Below are positions 1,253-40,459 of a stretch of 64,000 nucleotides of DNA, piece after piece; within the stretch, counting starts at the first letter, position 1, and each line of letters opens with the position of its first letter. The position numbers and the translations under genes are program-made. Under the pieces are notes generated by a model that did not search any database, was not told the DNA's origin, and saw only the letters and a program-made list of their open reading frames with translations. The stretch is from Eutreptiella sp. 'Long Island Sound 2002' (lineage: Eukaryota; Protista; Euglenida): contig OZ038379.1 in assembly GCA_964036045.1 (NCBI GenBank), forward strand, positions 23,436,001-23,500,000. Reading direction: 5' to 3'.

Positions 1253-4200
1253 CTTGGGCACCAAGGGGGGGAGGTAAGAAGATATAACCTCAGTCACCCC
1301 TTCAAAATTGTCACCATGCTCCTTAAGGATCCACACAGAGCGATGAGCATTGTTGACGCTTTGGGGACAAACAAAATGGCTGTATAACCCCTGCCACCTG
1401 GGGGAGAAATGAAATGGCGATATAACCCCTGTCATCTCAAGGGGAAATGAAATGGCTAGGTAGCCCGCATCAGGGAGAAATGAAAGAAATAAAAGGGCTA
1501 CAAAGTTCCTGCCATATTGGGGACAAATAGAATGGCTATGTAACTGATGCCGTCTCAGGGGAGAAATGAAATGGCTTCATAACCCCTGCGGTCTATGGCA
1601 GAAAATGGCTACACCCTTGCCCGCTCGGGGGCCACAAAGAGGGGAAGCGTTAAAAAAAATTTTGGGACTCTCTTTTACACAACTTAAAATGCTCGCCCTT
1701 AGAGGAAAACAGCATTGGTTGTCTTAGAGCCTGCGAAGCGGGGATGTCAAAAAGGGGGGGGGGGGTGGCACAACCCCTGCCGTCTGGGGGCTTGCAAAGC
1801 GGTGCAGAATCAAAGTGGCTACGTAACCCTTGCCGTCTGGGGGATCCCAAAATAGGGAGTATACTGGGCCCCAAAGTTCAAAGGTTGCTTTGTTGTCAAT
1901 GCAAATAATTTTTTCGTTGCAAAAGCAAATACAGTTCTTTCAGTAAAGGCAAGTAAAATCTTTTTTGCAGTAAAGGCAAATGCCAGTGTTCTTTAAGTGT
2001 TAGATGAGCAACCTTTTTTTTTTTTTGCTGTAAAGGCAAGTTACCCAGTCTTCTTCAAGTCTTTTAATACTCGCCAAAACAATTTTTCGAACTCGCAATT
2101 ACAGCAAAAACCGAATTACATGACCTACAACATACACAACACATGTCCACGAGGTATGTGTACACACACACAAGGTCCTGTGCACAAGAGGCCCAAGATC
2201 CACCAGGTGCCACACACCAGCAAGGTGCCACAGCTCCTCAGTCATCTCTGTGGACTGTCCCATCATGTCCAGAATCAGTGATGACTTCAAGAAGAAGGAC
2301 AAAATGTTGGTTTCGGCGACCACTTTCTCTTTGATGGACTTGCTCAGCAGCATCCGCATGAGCAGAAGCACAGTCCCAGGCCCGCGGTGGATCACGTTGC
2401 CCTTGACCTCGACTCGGGCCATACCGCTGACGACCACGTGGACCCCATGTGAATCCAAATGGGAGGAGACCATCTGCGGCATACAGGGCCGTTTGACAGG
2501 GGAGGCGCCGGGAAACAGGCATATCTGAGGCGCCTTTTGGGGCGCTGCCAAGATTAGAGAGGTCGCGTACAGAGGGGGCTGCCAACCCCCCCCCCCCCCC
2601 CTGCAAAAGGGGGGGGGATGAGGCGGACAAAGCGGAGCAACCAAAATTAAGATACCAGACTCCACACCCCGTGTTCACCCAGTCCCACAGTAAATGGGGG
2701 GTTGTTCGGGCGATTGGACTAACCCGAAGGCAATGCACCTTACAGCAGTGCACACAAACAACCCATACCCCTTGGGGAAGAGGAGGTCGAAGGGGTCCAA
2801 TCTGCCGTCTCATCCCTTGCATCCCCATTGCCACCATCCCAATGCACGCCATCCAGTCCTCAGGCTGAAGGTGAGGCACAAGCGGTGTGAAATGCCATGT
2901 CTTTTGGGTAACCTGATTTTGGTTGGTGAAGGTCATTTGTATGGGGCAGTGTGTGTTTGGGGGGGGAGGGGGATGAAGGCTCAGTAAGTGTGCCGGTTGG
3001 TACTTCCGGGTATCTGCCCTTGTTGAGGTTTTGGGGAGGGAATTGTCTATCGTTTGTCTTCAGACGCTGGGGCAAGGTACTTCGGTTTGTGGGGCAGTCG
3101 TCCCTCTGTTCACAGGTGCTGCTTCTGCCCCCTTAGCGTCCCCTCCACTGCCGGCGCCGGCAGTGCCTCACATGCATTTGTGTGTGGGGGGTTGGCACTG
3201 CAAAGGGGTGGACCCACAGCCCACGAGAACTTCCAGGCGCCGTTGACAAAGTTGTGTGGGACCCGCCTTCCCCCACTGCCCAGCAGGGGCCCCTGCAGGA
3301 TACGGCCTGGGTACAGGGCGTCTCTGATAGCCTTCCCTCTGTCCGCCAGGGCTTTGCTTGACGATGGCCGGTTCGTCTCGGTCTTGTTTCCGAACCCTCT
3401 GCCTGCCCTGCGCCGTCTGGGGGGCCCGCATGCCGTCGCCTCCGTCACGCCTCCGTCACGCCTCCGTCACGCCAGGACCGGCCAGAACACGAGGGAAAAC
3501 GGTTCCCCTACGCTTCACGGAAAACTGTAGCAGCGGCCGAGTGCCAGGGCTCGCCCAGTCGACAGCAACAGTCCGCTGGTCATTGACGTATCTTACCATC
3601 ATCTGAACGCTGTGGGCGGCGGTCGGTGCGCCAATCACATGTGAGGCAACCGGCGGTTGAGCGGTGACCACCGGCACAGCAAACGATCCCTTTGGGGGGG
3701 GGGGGGGGGGGCTGGGTGCTCAAGAAGAACCATGTTCCACGCCCTCCCTGTCGCACTGCAGGAGGACGGACCGGATGGGGGCGTGTCGTCCATCAGCCCC
3801 ACGGCGCAGGGCATGTGAGGGGGGCTCCTTCCCGCCCCTTCTGACACGAACCAAATCCCGACCTTCGTCCCCCGGGTGCCTGGCGGATCAACGCCCCCGG
3901 GCCCTGTGGGCCCTTTCCAAAGAGGGGGGGCGGTGACCTCTTGCCCGGCCTCCGTGGACACCAGCTCAGCCCCCTCCAGCAGCTCCGTCTGCTGCCGGGG
4001 GGTCATGCACTTGACGAAGCCCAGGGTCATGAAGATCTCCTCCGGCGTTGGGGCGTTGACGGATCGGACTCGGGTCTTGAGCTCCGCCATCCGCTTCTCA
4101 ATTTGGTGGATGATGGTGTGGGCGTCGGCGGCGGGCAGGAGGCCGGTGTGCTCCATGTTGTGGACCACCTGCCGCTCGTGGTTGAGGATGCAGCGCGACG

Positions 4201-40459: not shown

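Follow-up and report, generated by a model that had tools for sequence, protein, structure and literature searches.

A 64,000-nucleotide stretch of the genome of the euglenid Eutreptiella sp. 'Long Island Sound 2002' (GenBank assembly GCA_964036045.1, contig OZ038379.1, positions 23,436,001 to 23,500,000; referred to here as the window) most probably carries on its minus strand a single expressed gene that combines an Na+/H+ exchanger, a DEP domain, the cytosolic helices of SLC9C-type exchangers without their voltage sensor and a domain that is like a CNBD (cyclic-nucleotide-binding domain). This reading, to which we assign a probability of about 0.8, is the best overall explanation of the data. 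The gene model consists of 11 GT-AG exons running from 40459 to 2216, with an open frame of 1034 codons and no stops (Table 1). Exons were found by listing open reading frames (ORFs), by Pfam scans of open stretches and by reading splice sites, and were then joined for counts of frame, stops and hydropathy. A preliminary description based on the letters of the window had given the range as 2218-40459, in agreement with the ATG at 40459 and with the end of the last in-window exon near 2216-2218.

Judged by profile matches and motifs, exons 1-5 encode a complete exchanger core of the CPA1 family. Four of them match successive, collinear ranges of the Na_H_Exchanger profile (PF00999; Table 1), three with scores above the 26.2-bit cut-off and the fourth with 25.5 bits, and alignment with paralogues shows that exon 4 fills the gap remaining in the profile. 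CPA1 exchangers are defined by a Thr-Asp pair in an unwound helix, an Asn-Asp pair in the next helix and a conserved arginine in GLRG. The ion-binding motifs are intact in the translations, with SATDPVAV and SLLNDGTA in exon 2 and TGLRGAVGLA in exon 5; since ATDP, ND and GLRGAV are kept, the exchanger is predicted to be active and should be electroneutral. The protein belongs to the plasma-membrane-type CPA1 Na+/H+ exchangers, in the SLC9C/SOS1 branch. Exon 5 has matches to residues 416-495 of SLC9C1 from sea urchin (E = 2e-11) and to SOS1 of Arabidopsis (E = 7e-10).

The complete DEP domain, about 75 residues long, is an insertion that separates the first cytosolic helix from the AEKxSYWKQ helix and lies about 80 residues past the last membrane helix. 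The interval between LSDIS and the AEK helix measures 168 residues, compared with 94 in SLC9C1, and the surplus equals the length of one DEP domain. Against the Pfam DEP profile (PF00610, cut-off 32.7 bits), the exon 11067-10825 scores 39.9 bits and the longer ORF surrounding it (10567-11331) scores 42.4. The preliminary description had recognized a DEP-pattern domain in this exon, its exon 10; the segment passes the Pfam gathering threshold, but the first helix and hairpin (...LATLYPAIKAEIVVSDQTHQGRTFSQ) lie in a separate upstream exon, 12102-11866, with the remainder of the domain in exon 7. The placement that it had proposed, directly before the SLC9C-type helix ARQRLLGAEKCSYWKQ, is correct, with this helix found at the end of the exon and aligned to sea urchin SLC9C1 from residue 577 onwards. 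For paralogue ORFs that contain the entire domain, the scores are 42.0 and 35.9 bits and cover profile positions 2-72. An AlphaFold model of a paralogue (P0002, 63% identical; 20-row alignment) has a mean predicted local distance difference test score (pLDDT) of 87, with the core above 92, and its elements follow in the order expected of a DEP domain (H2-12, E16-20, E23-30, H31-41, H46-58, E62-64, E77-80). In a Foldseek search of the PDB with this model the best 46 matches were all DEP-containing structures, including DEPTOR, P-Rex1, Epac2, Dishevelled-2, RGS7/9, pleckstrin, LYCHOS and DEPDC5, in agreement with a DEP fold. Comparison of the DEP exon between the window gene and the paralogue L004 (see below) gave a nonsynonymous substitution rate (dN) of 0.20 and a synonymous rate (dS) of 0.79; the ratio dN/dS of about 0.25, similar to that of other cytosolic exons, indicates purifying selection. 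The tip of the hairpin, H-Q/H-G-R, is conserved in all four gene copies.

The gene is real and expressed. Two RNA contigs from estuary metatranscriptomes join the DEP exon to its neighbours on either side without mismatches (a slash marks the join in what follows). Contig X1 (record 7, 281 nucleotides) reads 11981-11862 followed by 11063-10903; because the shared GTGT can be shifted, its join 11862/11063 is the same as 11866/11067. Contig X2 (record 8, 399 nucleotides) reads 10956-10824 followed by 7029-6764, and its join 10824/7029 becomes 10825/7030 once the letters that could belong to either side are moved. These junctions coincide with the splice sites CAG/GT...AG/GTGTTC (11866/11067) and CAG/GT...AG/GAGGGC (10825/7030), the acceptor of the DEP exon being cacag/GTGTTC at 11067. 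In unique (non-repeat) intron bins the RNA depth is zero, with a DNA run giving about 30x over the same bins, and three estuary metatranscriptomes contain 8-13% of the words sampled from 6700-12200, approximately the exon share of that region. In-frame splicing of the DEP exon into the exchanger, as previously proposed, is thus seen in RNA on both sides of that exon, but the junction from exchanger to DEP is reached through three paralogues and not through RNA. A DEP exon spanning 11214-10825 was also considered and was ruled out, the paralogue ORFs and the RNA contig placing the acceptor at 11067 and the start of the domain in another exon.

When the DEP exon was compared by HMMER with 1.84 billion representative proteins, the window's own ORF and four fragments with 59-73% identity were recovered. 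Three large contigs in a single ENA assembly (ERZ25074135, contigs ctg10190, ctg10912 and ctg10624; here L001, L003 and L004, respectively) carry these fragments. The window's own ORF is present in identical form on ctg8407 of the same assembly. Because one assembly carries all of them, L001, L003 and L004 are paralogues and not independent taxa, and their assignment to another species was discarded. The organism has at least four such genes, to all of which the domain order exchanger-DEP-CNBD-like is common. Introns are placed elsewhere in the paralogues, so that their open frames cross the junctions of the window gene. In L001, the post-membrane exchanger helix (VRYALTVLEKERELAAS), the linker and two thirds of the DEP domain lie in a single frame (P0023). 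The paralogue ORF P0017 leads in one frame from the end of the DEP domain through its AEKCSFWKQ helix into the next helical exon. In L003 and L004 the exon 5/6, 7/8, 8/9, 9/10 and 10/11 junctions are bridged in single frames, with exons 8, 9 and 10 lying in one frame in L003. All three paralogues read across the junction from 18534 to 12102, and the spacing is the same in each. L004 is the nearest to the window gene (85% identity in the last membrane exon), and the L001 gene extends off the end of its contig.

These data bear on whether the model could be a fusion of two neighbouring genes, one for an exchanger and one for a DEP/CNBD-like protein, or a decaying pseudogene. No RNA contig spans 18534 to 12102, and the introns are long and rich in repeats, with one long interspersed nuclear element, which would favour such a reading. 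However, exon 5 by itself holds both the last membrane helices and the LSDISEQRK helix, and the latter continues without a stop into the linker in three paralogues and into the DEP domain in L001. In addition, all 11 exons are in frame with canonical splice sites, dN/dS is far below 1 and spliced RNA is present, leading us to regard a fusion or a pseudogene as highly improbable.

Beyond the DEP domain, alignment with sea urchin SLC9C1 indicates that the S1-S4 voltage sensor is absent. Residues 17-94 of P0017 align with SLC9C1 577-658 (E = 5.6e-7) and, eight residues further on, its segment FSFGYAIALGF aligns weakly with SLC9C1 833-853. Window exon 8 (7030-6755) has the same contiguous arrangement, with SLC9C1 ∼650-658 followed directly by 833-853, such that the ∼175 SLC9C1 residues between the flanks of the sensor are missing. 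Hydropathy peaks resembling transmembrane helices are confined to residues 36-531 of the model, with no hydrophobic helix afterwards. The distance from FGYALG to RHTSR is 66 residues, equal to SLC9C1 833-899 as counted on the alignments; given this identical spacing of the flanks, the missing part would be precisely the membrane segment S1-S4. The preliminary description had noted that QKHW to FGYALG falls within one exon and that the voltage-sensor domain is absent as in SOS1, which agrees with the jump of the SLC9C1 alignment from 658 to 833 in exon 7030-6755. Its wording 'voltage sensor out' does not hold up as well: since SOS1 also has no sensor, the absence is probably the older state, and an ancestral absence is simpler than a loss.

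The cytosolic scaffold of SLC9C is otherwise collinear, comprising the AEKxSYWKQ helix, the post-S4 helices, the linker and the CNBD (E = 5.6e-7, 7.8e-5 and 3.6e-11 against sea urchin SLC9C1). In its tail the protein keeps the first post-membrane helix, that with AEKxSYWKQ, the helices found on either side of S1-S4 in animals, the linker and a CNBD-type fold, together with a further conserved exon beyond the window. The L004 counterpart of exons 10-11 aligns with SLC9C1 residues 901-1124 (E = 3.6e-11), and a profile of the four paralogue tails matches SLC9C1 (4e-12), rice SOS1 (7e-7) and also Arabidopsis SOS1. In an AlphaFold model of the L004 piece, a β-roll with flanking helices is predicted with pLDDT values of 76-95 over residues 51-170; its structural matches include SLC9C1 and HCN1/2, with template-modelling (TM) scores of 0.78 to the human SLC9C1 CNBD and 0.77 to MloK1.

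The nucleotide-binding features of this domain appear to be worn. With the Pfam cNMP_binding profile (PF00027) the paralogues score 22.2, 16.3 and 16.2 bits, below the threshold of 27.5, and the window exons give no match. In the phosphate-binding cassette of the window protein, the alignment shows Leu-Leu in place of Gly-Glu and Ile in place of Arg; every paralogue likewise has other residues in place of the Arg and of the Glu of Gly-Glu. The subthreshold scores and the replaced cassette residues lead us to call the domain CNBD-like, and canonical binding of cAMP or cGMP is not expected. The NHE-DEP-CNBD architecture proposed in the preliminary description accordingly stands as a domain order, which is real, expressed and present in at least four genes under purifying selection, but its last member is only CNBD-like.

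Epac1/2 offer a precedent for a DEP domain and a CNBD-type fold on one chain, and the Epac DEP domain mediates membrane attachment. By analogy, cyclic nucleotides might still gate the exchanger through its CNBD as in SLC9C1, with the DEP domain merely targeting the protein to a membrane domain. The CNBD fold is indeed retained, as the TM scores of 0.77-0.78 attest, and the regulatory domain of Epac2 is among the best DEP fold matches. Nevertheless, the cNMP_binding scores of 16-22 bits and the replacement of Gly-Glu by Leu-Leu and of Arg by Ile make an Epac-like pairing improbable. In Epac, moreover, the DEP domain and CNBD are adjacent and control a RapGEF, whereas those of the window protein are ∼250 residues apart, flank the SLC9C-type helices and include a CNBD-like domain without the binding residues.

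Among proteins of known structure, animal SLC9C1 (sNHE; that of sea urchin) is the best match for all of the cytosolic pieces and for the last membrane exon (416-495, 577-658, 833-853 and 899-1124), and the helices, linker, CNBD fold and post-CNBD helix follow in the same order in both proteins. The window protein differs in having no S1-S4 (∼175 residues), in its degenerate cyclic-nucleotide cassette and in having an additional DEP domain of ∼75 residues between the parts aligned to SLC9C1 ∼495 and 577; furthermore, SLC9C1 is a sperm-specific animal gene, whereas the window gene comes from a protist with four paralogues. Plant SOS1 (NHX7) also belongs to CPA1 and shares an extended helical domain in the cytosol, a CNBD-like domain of the non-binding kind and the lack of a voltage sensor. 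Its sequence is similar as well, the last membrane exon matching it at E = 7e-10 and the tail profile matching rice SOS1 at 7e-7. However, it is a weaker match than SLC9C1 throughout and has no DEP domain.

SLC9C1 and SOS1 are the two best-studied exchangers that are autoinhibited by a large cytosolic tail, the former being opened by voltage and cAMP and the latter by phosphorylation. By analogy with both, the cytosolic tail of the window protein would hold the transport domain in an autoinhibited state. The membrane-proximal DEP domain, with its conserved basic hairpin H-Q-G-R, would bind acidic lipids in the inner leaflet, or else a partner protein, and this docking would shift the helical domain, thereby releasing or setting the autoinhibition. 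The DEP domain would then fill the gating role that is played by voltage and cAMP in sperm SLC9C1 and by SOS2/SOS3 phosphorylation in plants. We consider such a mechanism plausible although somewhat short of an even chance. The more specific proposal that the protein is a solute carrier gated by its DEP domain, in which the SLC9C/SOS1 autoinhibitory scaffold of this protist lineage is switched when the DEP domain docks to acidic lipids or a receptor-like partner, is more tentative still. If correct, Na+/H+ exchange, and hence cytosolic pH, would be a direct output of lipid or receptor signalling, and this would be the first transporter-fused DEP domain with a demonstrable regulatory job.

With the same architecture, the role of the DEP domain may instead be structural, the paired domains forming a second dimer interface or clamp beneath the transport domains without any signalling input. 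SLC9C1 and SOS1 are reported to be obligate dimers that make dimer contacts in the cytosol, and LYCHOS chains are found among the fold matches of the DEP model. In other DEP proteins the hairpin is the usual binding arm. The conservation of its tip in all four paralogues hints at a ligand or partner and argues against a purely structural role. Of the solved membrane transporters, LYCHOS (GPR155) is the only one that we found with a fused DEP domain, and in this dimeric crossover-motif elevator-type carrier the DEP domains pair with each other at the cytosolic face, with an unclear role beyond support of the dimer (PMC11525196). In contrast to the internal insertion in a regulatory tail found here, the DEP domain of LYCHOS is a C-terminal appendage; LYCHOS is also a PIN-like transporter rather than a CPA1 exchanger, carries a module resembling a G-protein-coupled receptor and is related in sequence to the window protein in its DEP fold only. 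A clamp similar to the LYCHOS DEP pair fits the data equally as well as the coupling to lipid or receptor signalling that the preliminary description had suggested, and on balance we regard it as the main alternative, though a rather doubtful one.

Several considerations weigh against the overall interpretation of the gene and of its DEP domain. The RNA evidence consists of short Logan contigs (281-399 nucleotides) from environmental samples, none of which is full length. For the exon 5/exon 6 junction (18534 to 12102) and the boundaries of exons 3, 4 and 5, the basis is collinearity with the paralogues together with the frame, and not RNA. Both folds, DEP and CNBD, come from models of paralogues with 53-65% identity to the window protein, whose own domains are split by introns. 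The C-terminus lies outside the window, and hence an SOS1-like autoinhibitory tail with its SOS2 phosphorylation site would fall outside the region read. Binding of lipids or partners by the DEP domain is putative, and for LYCHOS the authors of the structure see a dimer contact only, with any further role of the DEP domain unclear (PMC11525196).

We could not find the combination of a sensor-less SLC9C/SOS1-like exchanger, a worn CNBD and a DEP domain beneath the membrane described elsewhere, and as far as found it is new. No exchanger, and no similarity to the window's exchanger or tail exons, was present among the DEP relatives in 130 matches from the 1.84 billion proteins (phmmer against the window exons; the eight long ones by Pfam), paralogue fragments aside, a result that covers only DEP domains similar to this one, no exchanger-side or domain-architecture query having been made. 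Scanned with two DEP peptide patterns, the JGI metagenomes yielded 241 matches to the patterns, with no relative confirmed among them, and the ESM Atlas returned DEP-only clusters and bacterial exchanger fragments. Literature searches pairing the DEP domain with exchanger, antiporter, SLC9C, SOS1 or Euglena found no report. The remark in the preliminary description that the architecture was unrecognized among characterized CPA1 proteins is in keeping with these results, which yielded no description in the literature or among similar DEP relatives.

The architecture would place a third module on the scaffold shared by SLC9C1 and SOS1, at a defined point near the membrane, and supports the notion of the tail as a modular platform. 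The gene and its paralogues, four in all, provide a natural construct for probing a DEP domain fused to an elevator-type carrier, a question left open by the LYCHOS structures. The conservation of the sensor flanks with identical spacing in a protist also marks the exact site of the sensor in animal SLC9C1 and helps to reconstruct the origin of that chimaera.

Table 1. Exons of the exchanger-DEP gene within the window. Numbers are window positions; profile positions refer to Pfam Na_H_Exchanger.
Exon	Position	Strand	Content and evidence
1	40100..40459	minus	ATG at 40459 and first transmembrane helices; profile positions 8-76, 33.2 bits; donor AAG/GTGAGC
2	28313..28643	minus	Exchanger core with ATDP and LLNDG ion-binding motifs; profile positions 72-178, 66.8 bits; AG/GT splice sites
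3	27835..28190	minus	Exchanger helices; profile positions 175-280, 49.1 bits
4	25747..26077	minus	One exchanger helix and acidic loop; aligns with L004 1985-2209 (E = 7e-20) and L003 206-340
5	18534..18865	minus	Last two transmembrane helices (GLRGAVG motif) and first cytosolic helix (LSDISEQRK...ELAASKLQ); profile positions 313-375
6	11866..12102	minus	Linker (TFCANWTVV...), first helix and β-hairpin of DEP (...THQGRTFSQ); collinear with single frames of L001 (P0023), L003 and L004; 3' end joined by RNA to 11067
7 (exon 10 of the preliminary description)	10825..11067	minus	DEP helices 2-3 and closing strands, then start of SLC9C-type helix ARQRLLGAEKCSYWKQ; Pfam DEP 39.9 bits; RNA at both ends
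8 (exon 11 of the preliminary description)	6755..7030	minus	Cytosolic helices, contiguous here, between which SLC9C1 has its voltage sensor; no hydrophobic segment
9	5304..5413	minus	Basic helix (VSLVVLRKLRVAK...), collinear with cytosolic stretch after S4 of SLC9C1; conserved in L001, L003 and L004
10	3938..4205	minus	Linker helices and first helix of CNBD-like domain; SLC9C1 residues 899-961, E = 7.8e-5
11	2216..2473	minus	β-Roll of CNBD-like domain with degenerate phosphate-binding cassette; last in-window exon; aligns with L004, E = 6e-22

Exon borders are fixed by RNA or by the paralogues, other than the donors of exons 3 and 4. The exon 3 donor is at either 27835 or 27856, both of which keep the frame, and the join between exons 3 and 4 is read across by an ORF of L003. 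The 3' boundary of exon 4 is approximate and adjoins a (GT)n run; of its possible donors, that at 25747 alone is in frame with the acceptor at 18865. These two ends are hard to fix because microsatellites begin within ∼35 bases or less of the donors. Intronic (CA)n/(GT)n microsatellites occupy 16500-17800 (∼1.3 kb) and 27200-27800 (∼0.6 kb), and are also found at 25720-25745.

At its other end the gene runs past the start of the window. On the ENA contig with this gene, the next exon (GMHYTIWAAANIPPFNSW...) was located at L007 13174-13344, ∼0.7 kb past position 1 of the window; it matches nothing in Pfam or among PDB sequences. Within window 1-2215 there is no match to the counterpart of this exon in the paralogues.

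The introns and the adjoining sequence are rich in mobile elements. An apparently intact non-long-terminal-repeat retrotransposon lies within intron 1 at 29927-36276, on the minus strand and thus in the orientation of the gene, with an ORF1 of 606 amino acids (36276-34456) and an ORF2 of 1485 amino acids (34384-29927); (CA)n runs occur at both of its ends, near 29150-29240 and 36400-36460. The intron that follows the DEP exon contains a high-copy repeat block (8170-10560) with a DNA contig depth of 1e5-1e6, compared with ∼30 for unique sequence, and a metatranscriptome depth of hundreds to more than a thousand. This block includes an ORF of 227 amino acids at 9518-10201, and pieces similar to it are found in paralogue introns, for example at L003 11606-12154. 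A further intronic element (5870-6210) is ∼90% identical in translation to pieces in two L004 introns (12467-12550 and 18871-19138), which indicates that one repeat family has landed in introns of different members of the gene family. Degenerate retroelement pieces, interrupted by stops and including an RNase H-like part, are spread over 43850-58240 on the minus strand and resemble an element in an L004 intron (6400-9520; PF00075 RNase_H on record).

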